Below are positions 1 through 57,322 of a stretch of 64,000 nucleotides of DNA, piece by piece. The notes beneath the pieces were generated by a model. It was not told the DNA's origin, did not search any database, and saw nothing but the letters and a program-made list of their open reading frames with translations. This DNA is from Macrostomum lignano. Its lineage: Eukaryota. The DNA is taken from positions 136,021-200,020 of the forward strand of contig NIVC01001888.1 of the NCBI GenBank assembly GCA_002269645.1. The letters are read 5' to 3'. Every line of letters begins with the position of its first letter. Within the stretch, counting starts at the first letter, position 1. The translations under genes and the position numbers were made by a program.

Positions 1-540
1 CACAAGACCCATGTACAGAACGATTGCTAGAGACTTCTTCACCTCATTGTCGGTACACGCTCTCCAAGTTGATAGCAAATTGGGAAGAGCTCCGTCCTGA
101 GCTTCAGCTGTTGAAGCTCCATGTCAGCTCGGGCGTTGGTCCAGATGCGAATGGCAGACACCAGATCAGCGGTGAGAAAGTGCTGCAGATAGAATTGCAC
201 CTGGGCCATTTTATATGTACCTTCAGGAGCTTGTGCTTGAATGTCCGGGTTCAGGCCAGACACAGCGAGGAATTCTCGTGGTTAAGCACAGCGAAACGTA
301 CCATTCCACAATCCAGTGATTAAGCAGCTGTGTCAGCGGGAAAAAAGTCGCGCTGAAGAGGATCTCAAGGCAACTGCTGCAAAATGCGGAGGATGGCATC
401 GGAAAATGATGGAGCTACCTCCACCGGTGCATTACTGGCAACATATTCTCCTAGCTTGGTAAATTTCGAAACTGACTATTCAGCACGGTGGCTCCTTTGT
501 TGCGTTGCGTTGCCTTGTTAGATGCTAGAAGATGCACGAT
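1..540 (-). mobile_element. Inverted copy of the 5' part of the piggyBac transposase region (left palindrome arm; continues off the window)
   Basis: 1-540 is the reverse complement of 4376-4916, with no differences seen by eye. ORFs 24..323 and 39..263 mirror 4594..5025 and 4654..4878. Confidence 0.9.
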
Positions 541-2083
541 GACTGCTCACAACTGAGCATCAATGCTCACAACTGAGCATCACTGCTCACAACTGAGCAT
601 CACTGCTCACAACTGAGCATCACTGCTCACAACTGAGCATCAATGCTCACACCTGAGAATCACTGCTCACAACTGAGCATCACTGCTCACAACTGAGCAT
701 CACTGCTCACAACTGAGAATCACTGCTCACAACTGAGAATCACTGCTCACAACTGAGCATCACTGCTCACAACTGAGCATCACTGCTCACAACTAAGCAT
801 CACTGCTCACAACTGAGCATCACTGCTCACAACTGAGAATCACTGCTCACACCTGAGAATCACTGCTCACAACTGAGCATCACTGCTCACAACTGAGAAT
901 CACTGCTCACAACTGAGAATCACTGCTCACAACTGAGCATCACTGATCACAACTGAACATCACTGATCACAACTGAGCATCACTGATCACAACTGAGCAT
1001 CACTGATCACAACTGAGAATCACTGCTCACAACTGAGCATCACTGCTCACAACTGAGAATCACTGCTCACAACTGAGCATCACTGCTCACAACTGAGCAT
1101 CACTGCTCACACCTGAGAATCACTGCTCACACCTGAGAATCACTGCTCACACCTGAGAATCACTGCTCACACCTGAGAATCACTGCTCACACCTGAGAAT
1201 CACTGCTCACAACTAAGCATCACTGCTCACAACTGAGAATCACTGCTCACAACTGAGCATCACTGCTCACAACTGAGAATCACTTCTCACAACTGAGAAT
1301 CACTGCTCACAACTGAGCATCACTGCTCACACCTGAGAATCACTGCTCACAACTGAGCATCACTGCTCACAACTGAGCATCACTGCTCACACCTGAGAAT
1401 CACTGCTCACACCTGAGAATCACTGCTCACAACTGAGAATCACTGCTCACAACTGAGAATCACTGCTCACAACTGAGAATCACTGCTCACAACTAAGCAT
1501 CACTGCTCACAACTGAGAATCACTGCTCACAACTAAGCATCACTGCTCACAACTGAGAATCACTGCTCACAACTAAGCATCACTGCTCACAACTAAGCAT
1601 CACTGCTCACAACTAAGCATCACTGCTCACACCTGAGAATCACTGCTCACAACTAAGCATCACTGCTCACAACTGAGCATCACTGCTCACAACTGAGCAT
1701 CACTGCTCACACCTGAGAATCACTGCTCACACCTGAGCATCACTGCTCACACCTGAGCATCACTGCTCACACCTGAGAATCACTGCTCACACCTGAGCAT
1801 CACTGCTCACACCTGAGAATCACTGCTCACACCTGAGAATCACTGCTCACACCTGAGCATCACTGCTCACAACTGAGCATCACTGCTCACACCTGAGAAT
1901 CACTGCTCACACCTGAGAATCACTGCTCACAACTGAGAATCACTGCTCACACCTGAGAATCACTGCTGACACCTGAGAATCACTGCTCACAACTGAGAAT
2001 CACTGCTCACAACTGAGAATCACTGCTCACAGCTGAGAATCACTGCTCACAACTGAGCATCACTGCTCACACCTGAGCATCAC
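541..2083. repeat. 20-bp satellite (cactgctcacaactgagcat), about 77 units
   Basis: Direct 20-bp periodicity with a few single-base variants. Confidence 0.98.
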
Positions 2084-2417
2084 TCCTTTCAGCAGATAAT
2101 CTAGGAGTACTACATGCAATTATAAGCAGCACTAACGACTAGGCGTTCTGTTGATTATGTAGGTCAACACAGCTACAAGGGTTCATGCTTGAATGCAGTG
2201 CAAACAAAGGCTATTAAGGTGATTGTCTTACACGCCAACTCATCCTAACTGAGAGCACCAATCCCAGTGACCCAGCCCAAGTCAAACAGTATTTCGGAGG
2301 CAGTTGCAAGTTTTTGTTGCTGTGATCTTTTTAAGTAGGTAAGTCTGGCGCTCACGTGCCAGCCCGGCAGTCCAAACAGAAGGCAGTCGGAGCGGAAAAA
2401 CGTGCCGATTTCGGCTG

Positions 2418-2456
2418 CATAAATGCGTCGCCTAAAGCAGCTGGCTGAGATCAATT
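2418..2456 (+). promoter_or_regulatory. TATA-like CATAAAT (2418-2424) and Inr-like TCAATT (2451-2456) of peptide gene copy 1
   Basis: The two motifs are about 30 bp apart, 60-100 bp upstream of the ATG, and conserved in copy 2 (7690-7696, 7723-7728). Confidence 0.5.
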
Positions 2457-2516
2457 AACAGGAAAAGTAGTCACAGACTCTCAGCTTCATCAGCTCGCAC
2501 AGCAACAGACTCAACC

Positions 2517-2759
2517 ATGAAGTGGCAACTCGCTCTCGGACTTCTGCTCTGCACGGCCCTGGCCGCCGCCGCTCCCAGCGCGGAGCAGGCCGAGGACGCC
2601 GATGCGATGAACGCGCTGGAGGCCCTGGCCAACCTGGAGGAGTCCGACATGTCCGAGGACGGCGCCCTGCAGCCGGCCGAGAAGTGGCGCAGGAGGAGGC
2701 GCTTCCGCTGGAGGAAGGCCATCCGCGTGGCCGGCAAGGTCGCCAAGGCGGTGCTCTGA
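2517..2759 (+). CDS. Secreted cationic prepropeptide, antimicrobial-peptide-like (copy 1)
   Basis: 80 aa: hydrophobic signal peptide, acidic propiece (11 D/E), then KWRRRRRFRWRKAIRVAGKVAKAVL (12 K/R). 74 of 80 codons end in G/C. Single exon. Confidence 0.85.
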   Translation: MKWQLALGLLLCTALAAAAPSAEQAEDADAMNALEALANLEESDMSEDGALQPAEKWRRRRRFRWRKAIRVAGKVAKAVL

Positions 2760-2994
2760 GCTGAGCAGCTGAGCTCGGAGAACCCCGGCTTTGACTCTGA
2801 TCTGACTGCCCAAGTGCCCGAATACGCAGCACAAATACACGCTTAAGCTTAACAATTGGAGCTCCTATTTATTCAAAATGAAGGCATGCCGACCTCTGCA
2901 TAACCGTTCCGGACTCAACATTCTTTTGTAGCATTGAGGCTAGCTGGGAATGCAAAACAGAAGCATCATGTTTAGGCTTGATTAGATATGAATT

Positions 2995-4375
2995 TGATTC
3001 TCAGTTGTGAGCAGTGATGCTCAGTTGTGAGCAGTGATTCTCAGTTGTGAGCAGTGATGCTCAGGTGTGAGCAGTGATGCTTAGTTGTGAGCAGTGATGC
3101 TTAGTTGTGAGCAGTGATGCTTAGTTGTGAGCAGTGATGCTCAGTTGTGAGCAGTGATTCTCAGTTGTGAGCAGTGATGCTCAGGTGTGAGCAGTGATTC
3201 TCAGGTGTGAGCAGTGATTCTCAGGTGTGAGCAGTGATTCTCAGTTGTGAGCAGTGATGCTCAGTTGTGAGCAGTGATTCTCAGTTGTGAGCAGTGATGC
3301 TCAGTTGTGAGCAGTGATTCTCAGTTGTGATCAGTGATGCTCAGTTGTGATCAGTGATGCTCAGTTGTGAGCAGTGATTCTCAGTTGTGAGCAGTGATTC
3401 TCAGTTGTGAGCAGTGATGCTCAGGTGTGAGCAGTGATGCTCAGTTGTGAGCAGTGATGCTCAGTTGTGAGCAGTGATTCTCAGGTGTGAGCAGTGATTC
3501 TCAGTTGTGAGCAGTGATGCTTAGTTGTGAGCAGTGATGCTTAGTTGTGAGCAGTGATTCTCAGTTGTGAGCAGTGATGCTCAGTTGTGAGCAGTGATTC
3601 TCAGTTGTGAGCAGTGATGCTCAGTTGTGAGCAGTGATGCTTAGTTGTGAGCAGTGATGCTTAGTTGTGAGCAGTGATGCTCAGTTGTGAGCAGTGATGC
3701 TCAGTTGTGAGCAGTGATGCTCAGGTGTGAGCAGTGATTCTCAGGTGTGAGCAGTGATTCTCAGGTGTGAGCAGTGATGCTCAGTTGTGAGCAGTGATTC
3801 TCAGGTGTGAGCAGTGATGCTCAGTTGTGAGCAGTGATGCTCAGTTGTGAGCAGTGATTCTCAGTTGTGAGCAGTGATGCTCAGTTGTGAGCAGTGATTC
3901 TCAGTTGTGATCAGTGATGCTCAGTTGTGATCAGTGATGCTCAGTTGTGATCAGTGATGCTCAGTTGTGATCAGTGATGCTCAGTTGTGAGCAGTGATTC
4001 TCAGTTGTGAGCAGTGATTCTCAGTTGTGAGCAGTGATGCTCAGGTGTGAGCAGTGATGCTCAGTTGTGAGCAGTGATGCTTAGTTGTGAGCAGCGATGC
4101 TCAGTTGTGAGCAGTGATGCTTAGTTGTGAGCAGTGATGCTCAGTTGTGAGCAGTGATGCTCAGTTGTGAGCAGTGATTCTCAGTTGTGAGCAGTGATTC
4201 TCAGTTGTGAGCAGTGATGCTCAGTTGTGAGCAGTGATGCTCAGTTGTGAGCAGTGATTCTCAGGTGTGAGCATTGATGCTCAGTTGTGAGCAGTGATGC
4301 TCAGTTGTGAGCAGTGATGCTCAGTTGTGAGCAGTGATGCTCAGTTGTGAGCATTGATGCTCAGTTGTGAGCAGT
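2995..4375. repeat. Same 20-bp satellite in opposite orientation, about 69 units
   Basis: Unit tcagttgtgagcagtgatgc. The variant pattern mirrors 541-1020 near the piggyBac side. Confidence 0.98.
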
Positions 4376-6531
4376 CATCGTGCATCTTCTAGCATCTAAC
4401 AAGGCAACGCAACGCAACAAAGGAGCCACCGTGCTGAATAGTCAGTTTCGAAATTTACCAAGCTAGGAGAATATGTTGCCAGTAATGCACCGGTGGAGGT
4501 AGCTCCATCATTTTCCGATGCCATCCTCCGCATTTTGCAGCAGTTGCCTTGAGATCCTCTTCAGCGCGACTTTTTTCCCGCTGACACAGCTGCTTAATCA
4601 CTGGATTGTGGAATGGTACGTTTCGCTGTGCTTAACCACGAGAATTCCTCGCTGTGTCTGGCCTGAACCCGGACATTCAAGCACAAGCTCCTGAAGGTAC
4701 ATATAAAATGGCCCAGGTGCAATTCTATCTGCAGCACTTTCTCACCGCTGATCTGGTGTCTGCCATTCGCATCTGGACCAACGCCCGAGCTGACATGGAG
4801 CTTCAACAGCTGAAGCTCAGGACGGAGCTCTTCCCAATTTGCTATCAACTTGGAGAGCGTGTACCGACAATGAGGTGAAGAAGTCTCTAGCAATCGTTCT
4901 GTACATGGGTCTTGTGAAGAAGCCCGAAATGCACATGTACTGGTCCACGGGAGACTTCTACGGCGGCGAATACTTGCAGAAAGAACATTGCCTTGGAAGG
5001 GATCGGTTTGTGCAGATTTTATCATTCCTTCGATTTTACGACTGCACCACCGTCAACCAACAAGGACTCCTTGAAAAAGATTCGACCGTTTCTTAACATT
5101 GCCCGCGATATTTGCCAAGCAAATTACAGCCCAAGTCAAGGCAAATTACAGCCCAAGTCAAGAGGTGTCTGTCGATGAAGAACTGGTCATGTACAAGGGC
5201 AGGCTCATTTTCCGGCCGTTCATGCCCAACAAGCGTGCCAGATTCGGCATCAAGGTGTACTGCTGGACACAGAAGCTTTGACATGTTTTCTGTGGAACTT
5301 TCATGTACATGCTGCTAAGCAGGATAACGACAAGTTTGGAGATGGATTAAACTGCGGGAATTTGTCGATGAGCGAGAAGATCGTCCTTGAATTGAGTAAA
5401 AATTTGCTGGACCTGGGGCACAAGGTCTTCTGTGACAGCTGTTTCACATCGCTCCGTCTGGCGCAGTTTCTGCTGGAACTCAGTACTTTACTGACTGACT
5501 GGGACGGTGAGGCCCAATCGAGGTGTGCCGAATGAGCTGAAATTGCTGCCCGTGCAACCCGTCAGTCACGCACGGTGTTGCTGAAATCACGGAAGTGAGG
5601 CGAGTGATCCAAGGCCGAGCAGAGGAGTCAGTTTTAAAGCCGAATTCGGTGCTGCAGTACAATAAGAACATGGGAGGCGTTGATCGCCTTGATGCAGCAC
5701 TGCAGCCTTACAGTGGGGGGAGCCTACAGACCTACAGATGGCACCAGAAGCTCGGGTTCCACGTTTTGCTGCAGTTGGTCCGCAGTGCCTGGGTCTGCAA
5801 CTGCCAAGAAGGAAGCGATATCAAATTCGTTGAATTTTTGATAGCTGCGATCCGCACTCTCATGGAGCAGACAGGCCGGGGCAAACGTCTGAATACATCG
5901 AAGCGCAGGGCCGTCTCACAGCACGCGCCATCGAAGCTGCCGCCGACAGATGCCAATGCAAGGCCGACAAAGCGATGCAGAGTCTGCTACAGCAATGGTG
6001 TCAATTTTTGCAACTTAGTATTTAAGCCAGTTTTCATATCGATTCATATTGCACTTTTATTGCACTTACAAAATAATTTGGTGTGGCCAAGAGAACGGTG
6101 TTCGAATGCGCTGGTTGCCCAGGAGAGCCCGGGCTGTGTGCTGTCCCGTGCTTCAGAATTGGCACACTGCAGCAGCACAGTAGTTGCACTGGTGGTACGG
6201 TGTAAAACTTATTACGTTCAGAATACGAAATTCAAAACGCTCCTCCTAAATGCCTCATCGATGCATTAAATATTGTTTACCTAACTGTTCTTAGTTCTGT
6301 TGTTGTCCTTTTTTAAAGTTTTTAAAGAATTCTTATCTATCCTGTACTTGCAGTGAAATATAGTTGAAAAATTGCGAAAAACATGGTACGCACAGCATGC
6401 CATCCGTAACTTATGGGGATGTCGAAAAGTCATATTTATGCTAAACTATCTAGGCCATAGACATGTATTCTCAGTATATGGTTAAATGAGACCCATGGCA
6501 CGCCTGGCGTGTGCCATCAGTCTTTGGAGGG
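4376..6531 (+). mobile_element. Decayed piggyBac DNA transposon, right end intact, left end not found
   Basis: Transposase fragments carry the catalytic motifs VSVDEE, FCDSCFTS and YNKNMGGVDRLD plus a C-terminal Cys-rich domain, broken by frameshifts including a 22-bp duplication near 5119-5161. The element ends ...TTTGGAGGG at 6531 followed by TTAA (6532-6535). Confidence 0.9.
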
Positions 6532-6582
6532 TTAAGACTCAGGTAGGGTAAATGCTTAATACTTATTAACGAGTACCGAAGC

Positions 6583-7045
6583 TGTGAAGAGCAGTGATTC
6601 TCAGTTGTGAGCAGTGATTCTCAGTTGTGAGCAGTGATTCTCAGTTGTGAGCAGTGATTCTCAGTTATGAGCAGTGATTCTCAGGTGTGAGCAGTGATTC
6701 TCAGTTGTGAGCAGTGATGCTCAGTTGTGAGCAGTGATTCTCAGTTGTGAGCAGTGATTCTCAGTTATGAGCAGTGATTCTCAGGTGTGAGCAGTGATTC
6801 TCAGTTGTGAGCAGTGATTCTCAGTTATGAGCAGTGATTCTCAGGTGTGAGCAGTGATTCTCAGTTGTGAGCAGTGATGCTCAGTTGTGAGCAGTGATTC
6901 TCAGTTGTGAGCAGTGATTCTCAGTTGTGAGCAGTGATTCTCAGTTGTGAGCAGTGATTCTCACGTGTAAGCAGTGATTCTCAGTTGTGAGCAGTGATGC
7001 TCAGTTGTGAGCAGTTGTGAGCAGTGATTCTCAGTTGAAGAGCAA
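6583..7045. repeat. Third array of the 20-bp satellite
   Basis: Unit tcagttgtgagcagtgattc, starting about 50 bp after the piggyBac TTAA. Confidence 0.95.
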
Positions 7046-7788
7046 TGCATGATTATCTAGCTGTTGGGGGAAATGATTCTCAGTTATCAGTCATATTTAA
7101 TATGGGACTTTGTGGATAACCTTGAAATTCAGACACGGCTTCTCTATACAAATCTTTTATTAAACAAAAGTATAAGGATTTCACATCAGAAATGCTGAAT
7201 TCAATCATCAGTAATAATTAAAACGGAACCCCAGAGTCTTGGATGTTGTTACGCCTATGCTTTATCGATCATTTCAATGTATTCATCATGGATTCTCCAT
7301 CGTGAAGCTCAGCTCTCTTCATCGCGAGTTCCTGATGCTCATAAGCTACAAGAGCTATTAAATTGCGCATTTCAATAGAATGTGAATTCGATGACTATTC
7401 AAATAGGGCCGTGTTTGCAGTAGCAAGACCCCCAGAGTGCAACAGCCGCTCAAACAAACGTAACACTAAACGAAAAAACTCTAGTGTAAATTTACAGATT
7501 AAGTTGCTTGTTCAAGAACCTTATTACTCGTAATTATACAGGAATTCGGTTCTATTTGCCACCAGAAACTTTGTTTCAAATGATTGAAAAGAGAGTGTGC
7601 GATCTGGGAGAGGTCAGCCCTTGTCACGTGCCAGCCCAGCAGTCCAAACAGAAGGCAGTCGGAGCGGAAAAACGTGCCGATTTCGGCTGCATAAATGCGT
7701 CCCCTAAAGCAGCTGGCTGAGATCAATTAACAGGAATAGTAGTCACAGACTCTCAGCTTCATCAGCTCGCACAGCAACAAACTCAACC

Positions 7789-8031
7789 ATGAAGTGGCAA
7801 CTCGCTCTCGGACTTCTGCTCTGCACGGCCCTGGCCGCCGCCGCTCCCAGCGCGGAGCAGGCCGAGGACGCCGATGCGATGAACGCGCTGGAGGCCCTGG
7901 CCAACCTGGAGGAGTCCGACATGTCCGAGGACGGCGCCCTGCAGCCGGCCGAGAAGTGGCGCAGGAGGAGGCGCTTCCGCTGGAGGAAGGCCATCCGCGT
8001 GGCCGGCAAGGTCGCCAAGGCGGTGCTCTGA
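7789..8031 (+). CDS. Secreted cationic prepropeptide, antimicrobial-peptide-like (copy 2)
   Basis: CDS is nucleotide-identical to 2517-2759. The shared block is about 7625-8266 versus 2353-2994, with about 5 substitutions, all non-coding. Confidence 0.85.
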   Translation: MKWQLALGLLLCTALAAAAPSAEQAEDADAMNALEALANLEESDMSEDGALQPAEKWRRRRRFRWRKAIRVAGKVAKAVL

Positions 8032-8800
8032 GCTGAGCAGCTGAGCTCGGAGAACCCCGGCTTTGACTCTGATCTGACTGCCCAAGTGCCCGAATACGCA
8101 GCACAAATACACGCTTAAGCTTAACAATTGGAGCTCCTATTTATTCAAAATGAAGGCATGCCGACCTCTGCATGACCGTTCCGGACTCAACATTCTTTTG
8201 TAGCATTGAGGCTAGCTGGGAATGCAAAACAGAAGCATCATGTTTAGGCTTGATTAGATATGAATTTTTTTGGTGATGATTCACAAAGACTAAATATAAA
8301 GTTTTTACTGGTGGTTCATCAGTGTACTATACAGTTAGATAATTACATCACAAAAGTTGTGCTCGCAGCCTACTACTGCACACGGCTCTGTTAGTAGATA
8401 CAGTTGGCAAAAGCTTGTGCACAATAATGGGAGAGGTGATATTAACAAATGAGTGACGCACATTTCTAATTATTGATATTAATGATATAGGCATACAAAA
8501 TTGGCATTAGGGAAGCATGACGCATACATTTATTAATAAATTCAAAAACCTAGCATTCAAGTAAATTTCTATCGTTCTTGCGACTGAAGCTTAAAATACA
8601 CGCAGGAGACAACTGCAACACTTTATTAGATAGTAACAGACAAATTTTCGGTTACATTGTCCTGGAATAACACTGGCTGGAAACTGGAATAATATAAAAG
8701 TACGCACAATCAATCAGCTTAAACGTGCATCATTTTAACTAGCAGTAAGTGTTATTAAATGCTTCTATCCGATTTAAAATATGATTGAGCTCTTTCCCGA

Positions 8801-14953: not shown

Positions 14954-17900
14954 TAATAATAATAATAATAATAGTTACGCCCCACGCCAGCCACAGAAGT
15001 GGCCAAAAGGGGGGAGCGTAAAATCGCGCGTTTCAGAGCTAGGTCTCTAATGTGCTTCACACCGGCCGCCTGGCTGGGTGCTCACGCATCTTCAAAAAGG
15101 CGGTCGACGTAGCGGGCTGATCGTCCCTGGCCACGCCTGCGCGGTCCCTGCGGGGTCCACAGCAGGACGTCCTGCAGCGGCTCTGGGCAGTAGGCTTCGG
15201 CCCGGATGACATGTCCGGCCAGCCGCAGGCGCCGCTGACTCAGCAGGGCAGAAGGCCGCGTCAGGCCTGTGCGCTTGTACAGGGACTCGGTTGTCTCGCT
15301 GCCAGGGCCGCGGCGGGCGCCGAAAGCGGCGCGGACTAGGGCCGCATGTGCCGCGTCGAGCTGCGCCTCAAGCGCCCCGGTCAGCGTCCAGGTCTCAGCA
15401 TTGTACAGCAGGGCGGTCTCAACAACCGCCTGGAACAGCTGGGACCTGGCGTCGTCGGACAGGGCCTCGGAGAGCAGCACCGCCCGCACAGATCTTAAGG
15501 CAGCCCAGGCCTTGCCGCGCCGTCTCGCTAGGTCGTCGCCGAAGTCCGGCACCAGTCCGCCGAGGTAGACGAACTGAAGGCACTTCGGGAGCGACGTCCC
15601 GGGGCCGTCGCCGTCTCGAAGTCGAATCTCGGCGGGTAAATCATGCGGCACCGTCAGCACCTCGGTCTTCCTGGCGTTGATGACGAGACCGACCCTCGCC
15701 GCCGCTGCAGTCAAGCCGTCCAGCAGCCGTTGGGCGCCTTCGGCCGTCGAAGACAGCAGGGCGAGGTCGTCCGCGTAGCCAAGGACAGACAGTTTCTTTT
15801 CCGGGTGCCGTCTACTGGTGCGCCTTTGCAGCAGAAAGCCGTCCTCTGATGTCGGCAGGCCGGTCCTGAGCACCCAGTCCATCACCAGCACGAAGAGAAA
15901 GGGCGCCAGAGTGTCACCCTGTAGAACTCCGGACGTCGTGCTAAACAGGTCCGACGGTCCGTCTGGCGTCGCTACCGCGGCGGTGGTGTCCTGATACAGC
16001 GCCATGATGGCGGAGATCAGCTGCTGCGGCACGTTGTAGGCACGGAGAACGTGAGGCAGCGCGCCGCGCGTCACCGAGTCGAAGGCCTTGAGGAAGTCAA
16101 CAAAGATGACGATAAGGCTTGACTGGTGGATGCGCGCCTCCTCGATGATGCGGCGGAGGGCCAGGATCTGTGTCACCGTACCGCGACGGGGGCGGAACCC
16201 GTTCTGCTCGTACCGCAGGAACTAGTCCAGCACGGGCTGTAACCGTGCTAATAGCAACGGTTGAACAGCTTCGCGGTACAGGACATGAGCGAGATTCCAC
16301 GATGCTCCTCCTTCCGTGTAGTGCCCGGCTTCTTCGGGATGCCGACGATGTTGGCCTGGGTCCACTCGTGGGGCGCGGGGCCTCCCGCCAGGACGCCGTT
16401 CATCACGCGGGCCACCTCAGTGGCAACCCTTGTGACTCGCAGCGCCTCGACGGGGACCTCGTCCGGGCCGGGGGCGCGGCCTCCCGGAGCCCTGCGGGCG
16501 AATTCCACGACGTCGGTGCTGGTCACAGGACGGGTGTCGAAGTCCTCCTGCCGCGGCAGCGCCACCTCGGGGGGCAGCGGCATCTCGTTCGGCAGAGTCG
16601 GCGGCGGCGAAGAAGGTGCGCAGCTCGTTTCTGCGCTCTTCGGCCGTGTCGCCAGCCAGGTTGAGCGCCGTCTTCTTTTTGCGACCGGTTAGGGCGTTCA
16701 CGACCGGCCAGACGACCCTATTCTGCCGTTCAGGCCCAACGGAGGCGACTGCCCTGATTGCGTCGTCAACAGCGGCTTGCTGTCGACTAGCGTAGGCGTC
16801 TGCCAGGGCTTTCTCGGCATCGGATGTCGGTCGCCTGGCTCGTCGCAGCTGCTCGACTGTGCGGCGGGCCTCTCGGACCTCCGGGTCGCTCGCCCAAACC
16901 GGAAGTTGCCGTGACGCGGGCTCCATAAGCGGCAGAGTTTTAGCAGCGGCAGTGGTGATGGCTGAGCTGATTGTGGAGTAGTCTGGCGCCTGCGCAGATC
17001 CCAGGGCAGTCGCGAAGGTGTACGCAAAGTTGCTGAGGGTACCAGGGTCTTGCAAGGCGCGGAAAAATAGTCTCCTAGGGCGTTTTGGTGGCCTGTACAG
17101 CGGGTCAGAGAGCCTCAGGTCGCAGTAGAGAAGGCGATGGTCGGACCGGACAGCCAGGGGTTCCACTGTGTCACAGTTCTGCAGCCGACTGCGTTCGCGG
17201 TGTCGAACCAGCACGTGGTCAAGCTGTGCCAGGCGGGTCGTGGCGAGTCGGCCTCGCGCATTCTGTTTCCTTCGCTTGCAGCCGGCGAATGTTGCCAGCC
17301 GGTTGGGTGGTTTGCGGAAGCGCGTGTTGGCCGACACCAGGTCGAGCCTCGCCATCAGGTCCGCTAGCGCGGCGGTGTTGGCGTTCTGGCGTGGCGACAC
17401 AAACGGGCAGCGCTCGGACCGCGGTGCCACGGCGTTGAGGTCACCAAGCACCACCACAGTGTCGCGGTGCGCCACCGACTCGAGCTGCTCGGACAGGAGC
17501 TCGAAGAACTCCTGTGCCTCCTGCTGATGGGCAGCCGTGGGAGCGTACGCACAGAACAGCCGCGCATTGCAGCGGCGCAGCCTCACGTCCACGCGCAGCA
17601 GTCGGGCTGACAAGCTGACGCAGCAGACGCTCTCGCGTAGCCGTGGTCCGACGAGCGCGCCGACTCCTCCGTGGCCTCTGCTGTCCGCTGACGTGTAGTG
17701 CAGCGTCCAGCCGGCCCCCAGGTCTTCACGGTGAAGTCCAGACTCAGCAGTGATTGACAACTCCTGCAGCATGACGAGGTCTAGCCGCAGGTCAGATGCC
17801 AGCAGTGCGAGCATGCCCCTTCTCCAGGCGGACTTCAGTGTTCGGCAGTTAAAGGTGGCTAGTCTTAGAGCGCGGTTTGTAAAGGCTGGGGCCCGATGTT

Positions 17901-22013: not shown

Positions 22014-25000
22014 TCAGTCAGAGCCGCAGCCGAACACTTTGAGGCTGCGGTCAAGCGAGCAGCTGACAATGGACCGGGCGTTGGTGCCGAAGCGCAGTCC
22101 AGTGACGGCGGCGGTGTGGTTGTCCAGCATGCAGAGCTCGTTGAACTGCTTGGTGTGGTACAGCCGGATGTCGCCGCCGCCAGCGGCCAGGTAAGTGCCG
22201 GAGTGATCGAAGGCCAGGGCCCTGGCGTGAGAGCTGGCCGGGCCGGAAGGCTGGCCGGATTCGGAGCCGCCCAGCTGCAGCACCTTGAAGTTCTTGAGCT
22301 TGCGCAGATCCCACAGCCGGACTGTGGAGTCCTCGGCGGCCGTGGCCAGGTAATAGCCGTTCTCAGAGAAGGCAAGCGCCGTCAACGGGGCGGTGTGCTG
22401 CTCAAAGTTCGTTAAGAACTTTTGCTCGCGAAGGTCCCACATTTTGACCTTGAAATTGGAATTCGTATAAGATAATTGTATTATTCATAACCGTGGGGTC
22501 TGATCAAGCCGAGTGGAGACAGATTAGAGATGGGAGGGGAATGCAGACACAGATTAGAGATGGGAGGGGAGTGCAGACACAGATTAGAGATGGGAGGGGA
22601 GTGCAGACACAGATTAGAGATGGGAGGGGAGTGCAGACACAGATTAGAGATAGGAGGGGAATGCAGACACAGATTAGAGATGGGAGGGGAATGCAGACAC
22701 AGATTAGAGATGGGAGGGGAATGCAGACACAGATTAGAGATGGGAGGGGAATGCAGACACAGATTAGAGATGGGAGGGGAATGCAGACACAGATTAGAGA
22801 TGGGAGGGGAATGCAGACACAGATTAGAGATGGGAGGGGAATGCAGACACAGATTAGAGATGGGAGGGGAGTGCAGACACAGATTAGAGATGGGAGGGGA
22901 GTGCAGACACAGATTAGAGATGGGAGGGGAGTGCAGACACAGATTAGAGATGGGAGGGGAGTGCAGACACAGATTAGAGATGGGAGGGGAATGCAGACAC
23001 AGATTAGAGATGGGAGGGGAATGCAGACACAGATTAGAGATGGGAGGGGAGTGCAGACACAGATTAGAGATGGGAGGGGAATGCAGACACAGATTAGAGA
23101 TGGGAGGGGAATGCAGACACAGATTAGAGATGGGAGGGGAGTGCAGACACAGATTAGAGATGGGAGGGGAATGCAGACACAGATTAGAGATGGGAGGGGA
23201 ATGCAGACACAGATTAGAGATGGGAGGGGAGTGCAGACACAGATTAGAGATGGGAGGGGAATGCAGACGCACAGAGCGGAGGGGAGGGGAATTCAGACAC
23301 ACAGAGCGGAGGGGAGGGGAATGCAGACACACAGAGCGGAGGGGAGGGGAATGCAGACACACAGAGCGGAGGGGAGGGGAATTCAGACACACAGAGCGGA
23401 GGGGAGGGGAATGCAGACACACAGAGCGGAGGGGAGGGGAATGCAGACACACAGAGCGGAGGGGAGGGGAATGCAGACACACAGAGCGGAGGGGAGGGGA
23501 ATGCAGACACACAGAGCGGAGGGGAGGGGAATGCAGACACACAGAGCGGAGGGGAGGGGAATGCAGACACACAGAGCGGAGGGGAGGGGAATGCAGACAC
23601 ACAGAGCGGAGACGGGAGGGGAATGCAGACACACAGAGCGGAGGGGAGGGGAATGCAGACACACAGAGCGGAGACGGGAGGGGAATGCAGACACACAGAG
23701 CGGAGGGGAGGGGAATGCAGACACACAGAGCGGAGGGGAGGGGAATGCAGACACACAGAGCGGAGGGGAGGGGAATGCAGACACACAGAGCGGAGGGGAG
23801 GGGATTGCAGGCCAACAACACTAGCGGATCAGTGCCTGCAACGCCCCTAATGGAATGGAACAATCAGATCCAATAAGACGCACCTGCGCATCCTGGGTGC
23901 CGGTGGCGGCAATCATGCCGTCCGGATGCAGCTGGGCGCAGGTGAGCGGCTGCTGTCCGGCCGGATCGGCCACTCGGACCAGCAGGCGGCCGGCGCGGAT
24001 GTCGGCAAATGCCCAAGTGCCGTCGCGCGAGCCGGACAGCAGGAAGTCGCCAGTCGGATGAACGGAGAGGGCGGTGACGGCGTCCTCGTGGGCGCGCAGC
24101 TGGAATTAGGCGGGGAAATTGAAGGTAAAAAATGCACACGCGAGACAAGTGATTAATGCATATGCATTTGGCATAGAGGCAATGATGATCAGGGAGAAAA
24201 TAGCAACCGACAGCTCAGCCGCAGCTATTGCGCAGCGCATCTGAAGGCTGCATACGGCTGTTCAGTCCAAGGTCTGGGGGGTCGCCACACACACATTCAA
24301 TTACCCCAACTAAAGCTGGCACCATTTTACAGCTGGATGAACTGAAGCAATGCAGAGTTAAAGTGTCTCGCTCAAGGACACAAATTGTTCCAGTGAGATC
24401 AGGAATCGAACCCCCGACCTTCAAGTCGTGAGCCCGACGCTCTAACCGCTAGGCTACAACCCCTCCCAAACCAAAAACCAAAAAGAAATCATCATTAGAA
24501 TACAAACCTGGGTGCGCACCGCCGCAGTGCGCGGATCCCACACTAGCACTAGAGAGTCCTGACCGCCGGTGAACACTAGATCCTCCTCGTAGGGGTGATA
24601 GGCCACCGAGGTGACCTTCTTAGTGTGTCCGTGCAGCACGCAGACCAGCTGTTGCGCATCTGTGTTGAACACCGCGGCAGTTTTATCGTTGCCGCCGGTG
24701 ACAACCCGGGCTGGATTGGCCAGGAAGGCGTCCAGACAGAGGATCCCCGGATTAGAGGCCGAGTGCAGGCCGATGTGGCTGGCCAGCTGCCTGTAGGCCG
24801 ACACCAACTCCACTGAGCACAGGCCTTCGGGCGCCGATTTGCCTCGCTGCTTGCGCTGCGCAGTGAGCTCCTTGGCCTTCTGCTCCAGTCGGCCCGTGAC
24901 AGCGTCTGACATGCCGGATGGTTCCTCTAGTGCGGCCGCTGCGGCAACCGCGGCCGTGGCCTGCTGGGCATCGCCGGCAGCGTGCTCCGGCGTCGGCGGC

Positions 25001-26327
25001 GGGTGCTGCGGTGTGGCTGCGGCCGAGCCCATCGGCTGTTGGGTCGTCTGCGGCTTCAACGTGGCGAGCGCCTCGCGAGCGGCCGTGACCTCCTTGGTGA
25101 GGCGGGCGATAACGCGACAGGCGGCGTCGTGCTGAGTTGTGCGAGCGCGTGTGGGAGAGGGGTGTGAGATAGTGAGGAATAAAGTGGACTGTATGCTCGT
25201 ATATCCGAAATATCCCTAAATCCAAATTTTAGAGTTAATATGTTTCATTTTTATTTCAAATCTAATTCTGCATTCCAGAATTTATGATCGTCTTGTTAAT
25301 AATCCAGATTTCAGGCGCCAGATCCCAGATCCCAGATCTCAGATCCCAGATCCCAGATCTCAGATCCCAGATTTCAGATTTCAGATCTCAGATCCCAGAT
25401 CCTCAGATCCCAGATCCCAGATCTCAGATCCCAGATCTCAGATCCCAGATCTCAGATCCCAGATCTCAGATCCCAGATCTCAGATCCCAGATCTCAGATC
25501 CCAGATCTCAGATCCCAGATCTCAGATCCCAGATCCCAGATCTCAGATCCCAGATCTCAGATCCCAGATCTCAGATCCCAGATCTCAGATCCCAGATCTC
25601 AGATCCCAGATCTCAGATCCCAGATCTCAGATCCCAGATCTCAGATCCCAGATCTCAGATCCCAGATCTCAGATCCCAGATCTCAGATCCCAGATCTCAG
25701 ATCCCAGATCTCAGATCCCAGATCTCAGATCCCAGATCTCAGATCCCAGATCTCAGATCCCAGATCTCAGATCCCAGATCTCAGATCCCAGATCTCAGAT
25801 CCCAGATCTCAGATCCCAGATCTCAGATCCCAGATCTCAGATCCCAGATCTCAGATCCCAGATCTCAGATCCCAGATCTCAGATCCCAGATCTCAGATCC
25901 CAGATCTCAGATCCCAGATCTCAGATCCCAGATCTCAGATCCCAGATCTCAGATCCCAGACCCCAGCTCTCAGTTCCTAAATAAAGATTTATGAAATCAC
26001 CTGGTACATAGTCTGGGACAGCTCCTGTCTGGCTGTCTGCAGTTGCTGCCGCAGAGTGAAGGAATGCAGCATAACGGCATCCCACTCGTCCTGCAGGGCT
26101 TTGAGAATAGCCGGAATGCTGGTGGCGCTGGGCGGTCGCGGCTTGGCAGACGGCGGAACTTTAATGTCAACTAGCTGTTCAACAGTTAGCGGCTCGCCAT
26201 TCATGGGGTCGGTGCCGTTCTCTTGAATGTACTTTTCAATTAGGCGGCGTTCGAACACATGGCCGGACACCTGAGAGACGCAGGGGCTTTCGGGCACCTC
26301 CTGGCATATGCTGCAGGTTAGGGACAT
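22014..26327 (-). CDS. PRPF19: Pre-mRNA processing factor 19 (U-box, coiled coil, WD40), 533 aa; exons 26327-26001, 25131-24508, 24099-23884, 22448-22014
   Basis: U-box ([27 protein letters not shown]) and [21 protein letters not shown], followed by WD40 repeats. All three introns are GT-AG, phase 0, and in frame. Confidence 0.95.
22516..23810. repeat. Two abutting 30-bp minisatellites in PRP19 intron 3
   Basis: cagacacagattagagatgggaggggaatg switches near 23265 to cagacacacagagcggaggggaggggaatg. Confidence 0.95.
24200..24466 (-). mobile_element. tRNA-derived SINE with CORE-like body in PRP19 intron 2
   Basis: A box tagcctagcgg and B box ggttcgattcc, then gtgtccttgagcgagacactttaac...ccagctgtaaaatgg. 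The 3' boundary is uncertain. Confidence 0.75.
25318..25965. repeat. 7-bp (cagatcY) repeat with higher-order structure in PRP19 intron 1
   Basis: Direct periodicity. Confidence 0.95.
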
Positions 26328-27534: not shown

Positions 27535-30429
27535 ATGGAAGACAGCAGCGCCATGGACTTGTCGTTGCCAAGCGGAAGCGATTCGATGCAAAACGTCAGC
27601 AGCAATCAGGAGTCATCCTACATACCAATTAACTGTTTAGGCAAAGGCGCTTTTGGCGAGGCATGGCTCTATAGGTAATTTTTTACTCCCTTTGAATGTG
27701 TAAAAGCTTTATATAGCTATAGATTTAAGCACCATAACCAAACCAAGACTTTCACCAACACAGAAAAACGGAAGAGAACGAAGAGCAGCTAGTGGTTTGG
27801 AAGATGATCAACCTGACCGGACTAGACGAGAGGCGAAGACGAGAAGCGCAAAATGAAATCGACGTATTGCACATGCTCGACCATCCGAACATAGTAGCTT
27901 ATTACAATCATTTCTTTGACGGCAACATACTACTAATAGAGATGGAATACGCCAATGGAGGATCGCTTTATCAGTTTATTGGCCAGTGCAACTCGCTGCT
28001 CAAAGAGGAAACTATAATTTGGTACTTCTTCCAGATGACAATGGCAATTCGGCACATTCACGAAGCCAGCATACTGCACAGGGATATTAAAACATTAAAT
28101 ATCTTCCTGACCAAGGCGGGCTTGATCAAACTGGGCGATTTCGGCATTGCCAAGGTACTGGGCAGCGATGAGATGGCAGAGACGTGCCAGGGCACGCCGT
28201 ACTACATGTCGCCTGAACTAGTACAAGGCAAGCGGTACAACTACAAAAGCGATATTTGGGCGCTCGGCTGTGTGCTATTTGAACTTCTGACTCTAAAGCG
28301 CGCATTCGATGCCACTAATCAACTGAAGTTAGCGCAGAACATTGTGCACACTGAGATTAGCCTATCCCTGGTGGATGAAAGCTATTCGGTCCAGCTGAAG
28401 GCGCTGCTCGGTGCTACACTGAGCAAAGAGCCGGAGGCGCGACCGTCGGCTAGCGAGATTCTAATAAATAAACTTTTTTCGGACGGCGAACGGATGCAGT
28501 CGCGTGTGCGCGAACTTCAACAGCAGAGCCGGCTGGCGAGGCCATCCAGCGCTGGTACCGACACAACGCCAGTAGTTACGTCCAAGACAACTGAAGTATT
28601 CTATTGGGGCGGCGGTAAGCAGACTCCAATAAAGATCGAACAGTTTGAGCGACAGAACAGCGCACTCCAGGTGGCTACGGGTAGTCACCACATGGCGGTA
28701 GTCACAATAGAGCGCGAGGTGTTCACTTGGTGTAACGTGCAGGGCTGCGCTAAACTTTGTGGCCAACTAGGCCATGGTGATCTGGCCTCCTATCGGACAC
28801 CAAAAAAAGTGGAAAAGCTAAACGGAGTGCCAATCGAAGAGGCTCGCTGCGGTGACGAATTCACAGTGCTGCGCACCGTTGAAGGCCAACTGTACGCATG
28901 CGGATCCAACTATCACGGCTGTCTCGGCGTGCCGCGCGAACAGCTAGAAGAGGAGACGGGCGACTCAGATCAGGCCCTAGAGCCTGTGCCCGTCCCTTTC
29001 TTTCTCAACCTGGAGGTGAAACGAGTAGCCTGCGGCGATGCCCATGTGCTGGCGGTGACGCGCCAATCGGAGGTGTTCGCCTGGGGCTGCGGCGAGTTCG
29101 GCCGGCTGGGGCTGAACGGCGAGGACAACTACGACACGCCGCAGCCGGTCAGCCTGCCAGTGAAACGGCAGCTTATAGTCGGCGCTTGCTGCGGCTCGGA
29201 CGGCAGCTTTTTACTAACTGATGGAGGCCGAGTGCTCGCCTGCGGCAGCAATGAGCACAACAAACTCGGCTTTAATAGCGTCGCCAAGGGACTAACAGCA
29301 GCTAATTCTACCTGCAGTTTTGACACTCCATGCGTTCACACGTTCAAGGTGGTGAAACCGCTGACAAAATATCGCGTGCGCCAGTTAAGCTGCGGTCGAT
29401 CGCACACAGCGGCTATCGACGATTGCAACCAGTTGCTCATGTTCGGCTCCAATCGGATGGGCGAACTTGGCCTAGGAGAGATGCGGCACAGAAACGGCGT
29501 ATTTAATATTGGCCGAGCTTGCGGTGGTAAGCGCTTCCTACGAGTGGCCTGCGGTGACGGGTTCACTGTTGCCTGCACAACGGACAATCACATCTATAGC
29601 TGGGGCAGGGCAGACAACGGCCGACTAGGCATTGAACTACAGGCAGCGAGCCTGCTCAATATGAACAAAGCCTCGGCCTCAGCGTGCGTCTCAACGCCGA
29701 GACCAATGTTCGGCTCGCTGCACCTGGTGGCCGATATCTCCAGCCGGCACTGGCACAGCCTCATGATTGCAGAGCGGGTGAGTTTGACGAGTTTGACGTT
29801 GGACAATAAGATTTACAAGTCTGTGAGAGTGCAGGCTGAGGGATCAGTACCTGAAAACCCATAGCCCACTCCCTGCAAACAAACAAGCTAACCGATCCCC
29901 ACACAACTCAAATCAGGTTCTGGAGCAGCGCACAGTCAGACGAGGCGGCGGTCGAACACAAGCCGGCGTGTCGGCATCATCGGCGGCGAGAAGCGCCGGC
30001 TCGACCCTGGATGACTTGTCCTCGCTGCCAGCCGATGACGAGCAGCAGCAAGTATCGTCGGCAAGCCTAGGCGTCACAGATAGCGTCGACGGTGGGAACA
30101 GTGGCGCCAGCAGCGCTAACAGAGGCGCCGGCCTGGATGGAACAGACACCTGCCCTAGCTGGCTGGCAGCCGAGCTGCAGCAGGCGGAGTTCATACCAAT
30201 GGATAACGAAGGTGGAGGAGGATTAGGAGTAGCAGCGGCGGCAGCATCAGACGGCGGCCTTGACGAACAAACACCAGAGCTAACTCCGCGCTGCAATTGC
30301 AACTGCCACTGTCACAGCCTAATTGGCCTAAAGGATCAGGAGATTGCCAGACTACAAGCGGAAGTAGCAAGACTGATGGCGCAGCTTAGCAAAGGAGACG
30401 AAAAAAACAATGGTGGATCAATGGATTGA
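27535..30429 (+). CDS. NEK9: NIMA-related kinase 9 (kinase + RCC1 repeats + coiled coil), 888 aa; exons 27535-27674, 27764-29777, 29917-30429
   Basis: [45 protein letters not shown]1 repeats, and the NEK9-type [17 protein letters not shown] motif. Exon phases are consistent (2667 nt). Confidence 0.93.
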
Positions 30430-55582: not shown

Positions 55583-57066
55583 CTAATTAAAGGAACATCC
55601 GTGAAAGGTGCAATTGTTGAAGGCAAACTTCGTACCAACAGAATAGGCAGCTTCAGTGCTAACACTAACCTCCGTCGATACTGCAGTCTCACCGACGATC
55701 TCAACAGCATCAGCATGTTCGGGTGGCCCAGCTTCTTGCTCTAGATCATGACGATTCATGTGAACAGACTCACTCGTCTTTTGAAGCGACCGGTCGCGAC
55801 GCTTGGCCAGGTACCTCCTAGTCTTTCGCTCGCTCAGCTGTCCAGTAATGCTCATTATATCGCTCATGCTGTGCCCTGCCGCCTCGAGATCGCATATTCG
55901 CGTGACCCTGTTTTAGAGTGCAAATTTATATAGTTGGATTCATGAGTAATTGGTAACATAACATGTATCATAACATAATTAAAGTTACTATTATTAATTT
56001 ATCAGTCTTACCGAATGCAATGATTCGTGTAGGTCTTCGCAAGTCCCACCTTCGTACTCAAGTTTCTCATGAAGCCACTCAGATAATTCTCTCCACGGTT
56101 CTGCTTCGAGGAGAAAACAGGGCCTCCATCGTTGCGGCTGGCCAAAGGACGAGGAAACAGATTGTTGTCCTTCGTTGTAACTGGAAGCAGCTTGAGGTAT
56201 TTCTCCACCTTTTCCACGTCGTAAATTCTGGCCTGCTTGTTGTCCGGCTGCTTCTTGGCCTTCTCTGGATCTGCTGACTTATTTTTCGAGGGCAACGGAG
56301 GCAGACAGTAGTACGGCTTTCCATCAGAGTCGACGTGCAATTGAAGTGAGCTTCTATCCTTCAAGAACTTGAGGTGCTCCTGGCCTCGCTCGCCAAAGCT
56401 GTATATGATGTAGAATAAGAATTTGTCCTGCTCAACTTCAGCTGTGCTGCCTTGGAAGTAGATCATCAGCTTCCTCATGTCCCCCTCCTCGATTGGCTCA
56501 AACTGCTGCGTCCTCCCACCACTCCGGTGAAAGTCTCGAACCTTCACACGCAGCATGCTATTTTCAGAAGAAAAGTCTTCTCCATTGATGATGTCAACGG
56601 TTAGCTTCTCGATCATTCGCAAATAGCGCTGCAGTCCAGCCCTGATGCACACCAGCGATGCGGGAGAGTAGGGTTCGCCGTCAATCTTCTTCAGTTTAAA
56701 GTAGAAGTAGCGAATGTATTGGTTGAGCACCGAATTCGGAATGGTTTGTAAATTGCGCTGAAGATTTTCCTCTGTGAGGAATGTCCTGAACCGCTGTCCA
56801 TGGCTGATCATGTGCTTCCTGCTGTCTGCTGGTAGGCTGACAATCTCGGCGATGTCCATGGCGCTGATATCTACGCCGCCTTCCTGCAGGAGCGGCAGAT
56901 GCTCATCGGGCTCGGGCTCCTTTTGAATGAATTCGAGAAATCTAGCGAACTCGTCGTCCCTTCTGTCATTGTAAGAAGCCTCCGAAACAAAATTCAATTC
57001 GTCCTTGGTCACGTTGCCCAGCTCACTGCAGGGCAAATGCTTCCAATTAATGAGCGGTGCCTCCAT
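55583..57066 (-). CDS. Crypton/DUF3504-type tyrosine recombinase, 459 aa; exons 57066-56012 and 55907-55583
   Basis: GEPYSPASL, FGERGQE (R), SKNK (K), YTNHCIR (HxxR), ITGQ (H to Q), RRY (Y) and a C-terminal FNNCTF motif. A 104-bp GT-AG intron restores the frame, and no stops were seen. Confidence 0.85.
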
Positions 57067-57322
57067 CTCTGCAGCCGTCCGCTTTTCTCTATCTGAGATT
57101 TGACCTCTAGACACGCAAATATTTATATTTGTAATTAATTTAGGGGTGGGTGCAGAGTAAGGGGTGGGTGATTTCAGGTGCGCGACTTAAAGGTGAGACA
57201 TAGGCGAGGTGGAGGTAACCTTATCTCAAACCCCCTTAGCAGCATCGACTGATAAGAATTCACGATAGTGTACATAAAGTGCGTAGATTACGTAAGAGTT
57301 TTGAAATTTTAAGCAATGATGC

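Follow-up and report, generated by a model that had tools for sequence, protein, structure and literature searches.

A candidate host-defence peptide gene and its prepro family in the flatworm Macrostomum lignano

Precursors of the dermaseptins and other frog-skin active peptides (PF03032) carry a signal peptide, an acidic propiece, a dibasic site and a C-terminal peptide in that order, and their conserved prepro cassette is combined with peptides that are hypervariable and for the most part cationic; some of these are amidated, and an occasional cargo is non-cationic. Cathelicidins (PF00666) likewise join a conserved pro-region to a variable cationic C-terminal peptide, which may be of the alpha-helical, Pro/Arg-rich or Trp-rich type. 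Pleurocidin and the piscidins (PF08107) are linear, Cys-free, cationic amphipathic products whose precursors have an anionic piece on the C-terminal side of the peptide, the cecropins (PF00272) have a very short propiece, and in the conotoxin superfamilies the signal and pro region is strongly conserved, whereas the mature part is hypervariable and has a raised synonymous divergence as well. We describe here a gene of the flatworm Macrostomum lignano, at positions 2517 to 2759 of a 64,000-bp stretch of DNA (the window; NIVC01001888.1:136021-200020, Mlig_3_7 assembly GCA_002269645.1), which is very probably a genuine intronless gene and encodes an 80-residue prepropeptide predicted to be secreted. 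At least five near-identical copies occur in the genome, and the window contains two. The gene belongs to what we call the M. lignano MKWQLALGLLLC prepro family, a name defined in this analysis. An earlier note, made from the bare sequence of the window, had proposed a flatworm peptide of this kind, and the organism proved to be a flatworm.

As judged by sequence comparison, the M. lignano family is a member of none of the dermaseptins, cathelicidins, pleurocidin/piscidin peptides, cecropins or conotoxins; the profiles FSAP_sig_propep (PF03032), Pleurocidin (PF08107), Cecropin (PF00272) and Cathelicidin (PF00666) all fail to match the window protein. With the dermaseptins it has the order of parts and the pattern of conserved cassette and variable cargo in common, but the two come from different phyla and are not similar in sequence, the M. 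lignano coding sequence is intronless, and the processing site is KK rather than KR. The resemblance is one of mode of working and not of membership. The helical peptide predicted for the window gene and the Pro/Arg repeat of one relative (P0008) have parallels among the cathelicidin types, whereas the M. lignano propiece is acidic, 30-40 residues long and Cys-free, without the four-cysteine cathelin domain. Pleurocidin and the piscidins are of similar size, but their anionic piece follows the peptide and that of M. lignano precedes it; the propiece of the window protein has 36 residues, unlike that of the cecropins. Conotoxins are disulfide-rich ligands of receptors and channels, while the M. 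lignano peptides are mostly Cys-free polycations. Of the layouts to which the earlier note had likened the gene, that of the dermaseptins agrees in order, and those of pleurocidin/piscidin and the cecropins do not.

The open reading frame (ORF) on the forward strand has 80 codons and translates as MKWQLALGLLLCTALAAAAPSAEQAEDADAMNALEALANLEESDMSEDGALQPAEKWRRRRRFRWRKAIRVAGKVAKAVL, followed by a stop codon. The equal GenBank entry is a "hypothetical protein" of M. lignano, BOX15_Mlig024774g2, and searches of Pfam and PDB gave the protein no other name, in keeping with its earlier description as unnamed. The parts of the gene are as follows.

2394-2406, forward strand: putative upstream promoter motif GGAAAAACGTGCC, which precedes the TATA-like box by about 11 nt in all aligned genes of the family, that of Logan contig L003 among them
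2418-2424, forward strand: TATA-like box CATAAAT, which is CATAAAT or TATAAAT in all paralogues examined, about 95 nt upstream of the ATG
2517-2759, forward strand: coding sequence, copy 1, for an 80-residue prepropeptide identical to BOX15_Mlig024774g2 (fAMP-LP no. 142)
2517-2573, forward strand: predicted signal peptide, residues 1-19, boundary approximate, with hydrophobic core LALGLLLCTALAAAA; SignalP 4.1 = Y in S5 File of PMC10414684; 80% mean identity in the family
2574-2681, forward strand: acidic propiece, residues 20-55, with 11 D/E and the core EAMxALEALxxLDE, which is kept across the family
2682-2756, forward strand: C-terminal 25-mer KWRRRRRFRWRKAIRVAGKVAKAVL, cationic by residue counts, with a candidate mature 24-mer from W57 and a candidate 18-mer from F63 (2703-2756)

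Residues 20-55 contain 11 D or E and no K or R, and residues 56-80 contain 12 K or R, no D or E and no Cys; with 13 basic and 11 acidic residues the whole precursor has a net charge of +2. On recounting, the hydrophobic leader, the acidic propiece, the Cys-free basic 25-mer and the near-neutral precursor were all as first described. Proline at +1 (Pro20) disfavours a signal peptidase cut after A19.

The GC content of the three codon positions is 0.69, 0.51 and 0.91 (0.925 at the third position without the stop codon; 92% had been reported from the sequence alone). Third-position GC is 0.62-0.78 in the other coding ORFs of the window, and the flanks of the gene have a GC content of 0.47. Five overlapping ORFs of 80-125 amino acids occupy the GC-rich stretch of the gene, so ORF length by itself is no proof of coding. 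We took the 2517-2759 frame to be real because of its codon-position GC, the existence of relatives in the same frame with in-frame length differences, and the pattern of variation among its copies. On these grounds the window gene is very probably real. The probability that it encodes a secreted, processed peptide is high. The canonical AATAAA was not found after its stop codon, where only AATACA (2834) and AATGAA (2877) occur.

Relatives of the window protein were collected with an exhaustive phmmer search over 1.84 billion representatives followed by two profile searches, and were clustered at 90% identity. The family comprises at least 23 clusters and about 47 distinct sequences, all of them "hypothetical proteins" of M. 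lignano except one Logan contig. The phmmer relatives had E values of 1e-10 to 1e-4, six of them between 1e-10 and 5e-6. A word-indexed protein search matched only the gene's own locus, and the relatives became visible only with the exhaustive phmmer search. A search with a profile of the prepro part alone, made to avoid saturation by Arg-rich words, yielded one further divergent member (P0028) and no other taxon. The phmmer match P0007 was rejected as a spurious match to a repeat protein. In Pfam scans nine relatives gave sub-threshold noise only, and a borderline Lock_Gag1-like match on P0015 was dismissed because it arises from a duplicated segment of the propiece.

The signal peptide of the family, M(K/R)WQ(L/F)(A/V)LGLLLCxxLA, has a mean pairwise identity of 0.80, and the acidic propiece, with its core EAMxALEALxxLDE, one of 0.55. 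The window protein carries both, with average identities to the other members of 0.76 and 0.50, respectively. The C-terminal peptide, which is preceded by KK or KKK in the compared relatives, is the least conserved part, with a mean pairwise identity of 0.32 and lengths of 7-37 residues. Between close paralogues the prepro part had a nonsynonymous divergence (dN) of 0.02-0.11, against 0.18-0.49 for the peptide part, where the synonymous divergence (dS) was higher as well; with only 20-30 codons to compare, the contrast is a pattern and not a test. The net charge of the family peptides ranges from +2 to +18, and many of them carry an amidation signal (G, GK or GKR) at the C-terminus. Examples of these peptides are listed here.

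FVRVRVRLG, FVRVRARIRLG, WLRVRARVRIG, IFRVRVHIG and IFRVHVRFG: C-terminal peptides with alternating hydrophobic and basic residues, a hydrophobic moment of about 0.7 at 170 degrees and a C-terminal Gly
FRIRIRWGRVARNVLRLLGK: C-terminal peptide of a relative
WLGRRRRVRIRWRKVLRLVYRIYRHMPLGK: C-terminal peptide of a relative
WRIRFRRIRIRWRRVYRVVRTAYRIYRHLPFPGK: C-terminal peptide of a relative
WRIKSACKIFRRLLHLARKCYAKKG: C-terminal peptide of a relative
FLRVRLPRVRMPRVRLPRVRLPRLRVRFRWSKK: C-terminal peptide of a relative, a Pro/Arg repeat
AVYKPNYYKD: C-terminal peptide of P0028, a non-cationic outlier

The sole member found outside the M. lignano annotation is on Logan contig L003 (929 bp, run SRR31628392), whose gene at 541-813 encodes the FLRVRLPRVRMPRVRLPRVRLPRLRVRFRWSKK peptide and has the same promoter module. 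Several members are clustered: locus L004 (NIVC01001664.1) has at least five family genes in 27 kb (10001-37330), including two pseudogenes, one with an in-frame stop (17007-) and one with a frameshift (26354-), and locus L005 has two genes. The 139-residue model BOX15_Mlig001477g4 consists of the start of one L004 copy and the whole of a second copy; as these lie 27 kb apart, the model is chimeric. The family retains its promoter, signal peptide and propiece while diversifying its C-terminal peptide, and so far it has been seen almost exclusively in M. lignano. The proposal of a peptide family was thus borne out, and a multigene family with a common promoter and prepro cassette appears not to have been recognized previously; neither the signal-peptide nor the peptide strings of the family occur in the searchable literature.

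When 11 upstream regions were aligned, including two from the L004 pseudogenes, they were unrelated up to a sharply conserved module consisting of CGGAA(A)AACGTGCC, a spacer of about 11 nt, and (G)CATAAAT or TATAAATA, after which a conserved 5' untranslated region (CTCAGCTTCATCAG...) follows across the family. The window gene conforms to the family pattern of GGAAA(A/C)ACGTG(C/G)(C/T), a 9-14 nt spacer and (C/T)ATAAAT, followed by an intronless coding sequence, and an uninterrupted single-exon ORF was present in all nine intact family genes read at the DNA level. In the 64-kb window the pattern of motif plus TATA-like box has only two matches (2394-2424 and 7666-7696), both before copies of the gene, with a chance expectation of 0. 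In relatives, the corresponding TATA box is followed after about 30 nt by the 5' ends of "partial" coding models derived from transcripts, in agreement with TATA-directed initiation. The TATA-like motif of the earlier note therefore corresponds to a box conserved across paralogues, and the family-specific motif upstream of it, whose conservation is clear, probably acts as part of the promoter.

The coding sequence is part of a larger duplicated unit in a palindromic locus, the elements of which within the window are as follows.

2352-2994, forward strand: gene unit copy 1 (promoter, 5' untranslated region, intronless coding sequence and 3' untranslated region), a duplicated block with 99.2% identity to 7624-8266
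7624-8266, forward strand: gene unit copy 2, the duplicate of 2352-2994, with motif and TATA-like box at 7666-7696
7789-8031, forward strand: coding sequence, copy 2, for the same 80-residue protein as copy 1
1-1922, no strand assigned: left arm of the inverted repeat bracketing copy 1, mostly a 20-bp satellite (542-2084)
2995-4916, no strand assigned: right arm, 96.8% identical to the inverse of 1-1922, with satellite at 2995-4375

Exact look-up of the 80-residue protein led to two Mlig_3_7 contigs. Positions 1-7428 of the window are 100% identical, in reverse, to locus L002 (NIVC01001888.1:123206-143448), and 2.6 kb beyond the left edge of the window there is a third copy of the gene (copy 0), on the opposite strand. 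Two further copies are on contig NIVC01001363.1, and a variant, V70I (BOX15_Mlig024774g1), is on a third contig. Similarity among the five aligned genomic copies is confined to a segment from about -165 to about +421 relative to the ATG, outside of which the sequences differ. Within it, the 343 bp of co-duplicated non-coding DNA contain 14 substitutions or indels, and the 243-bp coding sequence contains one synonymous and no amino-acid change (Fisher p = 0.006-0.02 for coding versus non-coding change); there is also one 5-bp repeat-unit deletion that spans the stop codon and leaves the protein unaltered. The low variation of the coding sequence fits purifying selection on the protein, as far as can be read from these copies.

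Copy 1 occupies the centre, of about 1 kb, of a palindrome whose arms are mostly 20-bp satellite, with a further array at 6589-7015. In L002 (714-9227) the arms measure 3.7 kb and are 98.3% identical, and copies 0 (reverse strand) and 2 (forward strand) are mirror-oriented, each just beyond one arm. Locus L001, on the second contig, likewise has a divergent gene pair, so the palindromic arrangement of the genes is probably real. A second, nested palindrome lies at the end of the contig (48848-64000), where 50002-52296 matches 62281-59992 at 91% and 49395-51210 matches 63996-62169 at 89%. It contains satellites of 13/14, 21 and 19/39 bp in inverse orientation and could be either genuine or an artefact of long-read assembly; at its centre, near 56 kb, is an ORF on the reverse strand (56008-57114) with a weak match to QRICH1.

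All gene models in the GenBank annotation of Mlig_3_7 derive from transcripts; they were built with StringTie and TACO from RNA-seq and a mapped de novo transcriptome and split by evidence of trans-splicing and poly(A) addition (PMC5730564). A stand-alone 80-residue coding sequence is annotated in both L001 and L002, which also speaks for a real gene, and a 103-residue model starts with copy 1 of the window and extends toward copy 2. In two further models, P0001 (127 residues) and P0004 (129 residues), an antisense ORF of one copy is fused to the sense ORF of its inverted neighbour; we take these chimeras to be artefacts of read assembly over inverted duplicates.

The earlier note had placed a convertase site at RRRRR and RRFR. 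Both motifs are present in the precursor, but by homology RRRRR is probably not the site. The position aligned with the KK of the relatives is E55-K56, a weaker monobasic site, and RRRRR lies five residues beyond it. In the closest relatives RRRR is retained inside the peptide, as in KK|WLGRRRRVRIRWRKVLRL, which argues that RRRRR is not a conserved processing site; on this alignment it may instead belong to the mature peptide. A cut at E55-K56 would give the 24-mer WRRRRRFRWRKAIRVAGKVAKAVL, with a charge of +11, and a cut after RRRRR, which is where ProP places it, the 18-mer FRWRKAIRVAGKVAKAVL, with a charge of +6. At 100 degrees the hydrophobic moment of the 18-mer is 0.42, comparable with that of magainin (0.48) and melittin (0.39). 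On a helical wheel R4, K5, R8, K12 and K15 fall inside an arc of 100 degrees, and W3, I7, V9, A10, V13, A14, V17 and L18 are on the opposite side.

The prediction of an antimicrobial peptide (AMP)-like product for the window protein is not new, as the same 18-mer is in a supplementary table of 2023. Irvine et al. (PLoS Pathog, PMC10414684) screened all flatworm proteomes of WormBase ParaSite with SignalP 4.1, ProP and 11 AMP predictors. In their S5 File, BOX15_Mlig024774g2, which has the same 80 residues as the window protein, and BOX15_Mlig024774g1 form fAMP-LP no. 142, with the entries SP = Y, PP = 1, peptide FRWRKAIRVAGKVAKAVL and prediction % = 100. Thus the SignalP and ProP checks that the earlier note had proposed have positive published results (a signal peptide and one ProP site), and its impression of AMP-likeness is backed independently by all of the AMP predictors. 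The pipeline-step entry is "Same genome", and groups from one assembly were removed before prioritization; no. 142 is a row of a pre-filter table that was neither named in the text, prioritized nor assayed. In the part of S5 File covered here, BOX15_Mlig001477g4 stands separately as "Ungrouped 544", so that three family proteins appear in two groups and the others are absent. Searches of the literature for the gene identifiers, the peptide strings and M. lignano immunity returned nothing relevant besides this supplement, and nothing on the family was found in the supplements of Grudniewska 2018, of a paper of 2026 on RNA-seq and ploidy, and of one of 2023 on experimental evolution.

We put the probability that the window peptide is a host-defence (antimicrobial) peptide at about one half, because of its composition, the published consensus of predictors, and the pattern of conserved cassette and hypervariable cargo. 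The gene would be transcribed from a compact TATA promoter with the conserved family-specific upstream motif, and the predicted signal peptide would direct its product to secretion. The propiece, which is acidic and probably helical, may escort the cationic C-terminus and neutralize it during transport, until cleavage at the basic site (E55-K56 and/or RRRRR) by a proprotein convertase of the subtilisin type would give the 24-mer or the 18-mer. The freed polycation, amphipathic and probably helical, would then bind and disrupt anionic membranes. By analogy with the systems described above, it is possible, although less than probable, that this is the first host-defence peptide gene family recognized in a free-living early-branching flatworm: an independent prepro-cassette system with dozens of cationic payloads (helical, Pro/Arg-repeat and amidated alternating 8- to 10-mers) in satellite-rich palindromic loci.

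A number of observations weigh against a host-defence role. AMP predictors score most short cationic peptides positive, and no antimicrobial assay of the mature peptide was found in the searchable literature, where only in silico predictors have been applied. A Pfam-A hmmscan of the window protein (E <= 10) gave three unrelated sub-threshold matches and no named AMP family; neither the 25-mer nor the family profile matched any PDB sequence (E <= 10). All 16 compared relatives have KK or KKK at the processing site and the window protein does not, and it ends in ...KAVL without the C-terminal Gly of most relatives. The amphipathic helix of the earlier note stands insofar as known helical AMPs have moments like that of the 18-mer, but the same value is attained by 9% of shuffles (p = 0.09, not significant), and the AlphaFold2 model, made with a 9-sequence alignment, is of low confidence, with a mean predicted local distance difference test (pLDDT) score of 60 and a predicted template modelling score of 0.26; its helices, also of low confidence, are at residues 4-17, 27-41 and 54-79, the last with pLDDT of about 60-67. 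P0028 (BOX15_Mlig020534g2, outside the window) has the family signal peptide and KK site with a non-cationic peptide, and P0027 carries a peptide of zero charge, so the prepro cassette is not reserved for polycations. Gene conversion inside the palindromic locus could account for part of the identity of the coding sequences among copies.

Records of expression concern a paralogue and belong on the same side. The study of Ramm et al. 2019 was reportedly a screen for socially sensitive genes. The in situ pattern for transcript RNA815_1838.3 is listed as "gonads" in Table S11 of Brand et al. 2020, citing Ramm et al. 2019. RNA815_1838.3 is a 501-nt de novo transcript, and its probe primers have exact matches that delimit L004 9977-10340, an interval covering the entire L004_10001 gene. 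It has about 50-180 reads per positional RNA-seq sample (93, 94, 49 and 176 reads in fragments A-D; class 0,0,0), is already present in the head-only fragment, and has no regional enrichment. Neither the in situ result nor the positional RNA-seq points to an epithelial, gut or other barrier tissue. The probe has 74% identity to the window gene over 136 nt, so neither data set bears directly on the window gene.

The gonad listing, obtained with a probe over a whole family gene, is a reason to consider that the family encodes reproduction-related secreted peptides, made in or around the gonads and acting in gamete maturation, egg provisioning or sexual conflict, with their divergence driven by sexual selection. 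The variable peptide part evolves fast, and the family looks lineage-restricted, as do many Macrostomum reproductive genes (PMC7336406). We nevertheless consider this role rather unlikely; the reads in the head-only fragment and the low similarity of the probe to the window gene count against it. Gonad expression is in any case compatible with an antimicrobial role; andropin, the ceratotoxins and Hydra periculin are AMPs of the germline or reproductive tract. If expression in the gonads is included, it would suggest protection of the germline or eggs, and one may speculate that the data could be reconciled by an AMP that protects the germline or the eggs. A nuclear basic protein of protamine type, which might be suggested by the Arg-rich peptide and the gonad signal, was rejected on account of the conserved signal peptide, propiece and amidation signals. 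The releasing factor of the duo-gland adhesive system was considered too and set aside for want of support. Those same features, a signal peptide, a spacer, KK and a C-terminal Gly, GK or GKR, are also the classical processing grammar of neuropeptides, so that the relatives could be precursors of signalling peptides (neuropeptides or hormones) whose short amidated products act on receptors, with the window member as a divergent paralogue. Candidate products would include FVRVHVRF-NH2 and IFRVRVHI-NH2, and two relatives would end in -RFamide. Neuropeptide families, however, conserve the mature peptide, which is the least conserved part here (0.32, against 0.80 for the signal peptide, with lengths of 7-37 residues); such peptides rarely have charges as high as the +18 reached here, an amidation signal is absent from the window member, and the family sequences were not found in the searchable literature. 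A signalling function is accordingly quite improbable.

Much the same membrane-active polycation chemistry could serve another target, in cytolytic or toxin-like secretions directed against prey, competitors or predators. Such secretions would have every feature of a host-defence peptide, from which they are indistinguishable in silico, and a conserved prepro part with a hypervariable mature part is a hallmark of venom superfamilies such as the conotoxins. We give this explanation little weight, as expression in pharyngeal, rhabdite or other gland cells is without support and M. lignano feeds on diatoms. The ORF might, finally, be non-functional or merely transcribed, a piece of young duplicated DNA in a satellite-rich palindrome that owes its AMP-like look to GC-rich sequence full of Arg codons. 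The repeat-rich palindromic setting, the several overlapping ORFs in one GC-rich stretch, the chimeric models P0001 and P0004 over the locus, and the two pseudogenes of the L004 cluster are all in line with this. It is nonetheless very remote, because the frame, signal peptide, propiece and KK site are kept in 23 or more diverged clusters with length differences that preserve the frame, the promoter too is conserved, and non-coding sequence varies more than coding sequence among the copies.

The rest of the window contains further coding features. ORFs of the long interspersed nuclear element type occupy 15082-17814 on the reverse strand (GC 0.65), where an endonuclease/exonuclease/phosphatase domain at 16417-17814 precedes a reverse transcriptase at 15082-16176. 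An open frame of 690 amino acids on the forward strand (27792-29864) has a protein kinase domain and then RCC1 repeats, is NEK9-like, and is apparently one large exon of a host gene. The ORF at 24454-25059 on the reverse strand has a match to the WD40 repeats of Prp19 type and is probably an exon of a Prp19-like gene.

Immune effectors of flatworms are almost unknown. In the 2023 helminth screen a Taenia peptide is called the first cestode AMP, and species-restricted candidates such as the window peptide were discarded (PMC10414684). If the window peptide is antimicrobial, there would be a whole family to study in M. lignano, a transparent animal in which transgenesis and RNA interference are available, with a promoter of about 165 bp, and the diversification of an AMP repertoire, its regulation, and the protection of eggs and germline would become testable. 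Peptide chemistry could also draw on simple templates from the family, namely the Pro/Arg repeat peptide and the short amidated peptides in which hydrophobic and basic residues alternate. Should the peptides prove not to be antimicrobial, the family would still clearly exemplify, in a new phylum, how a conserved secretory cassette is coupled to hypervariable cargo.

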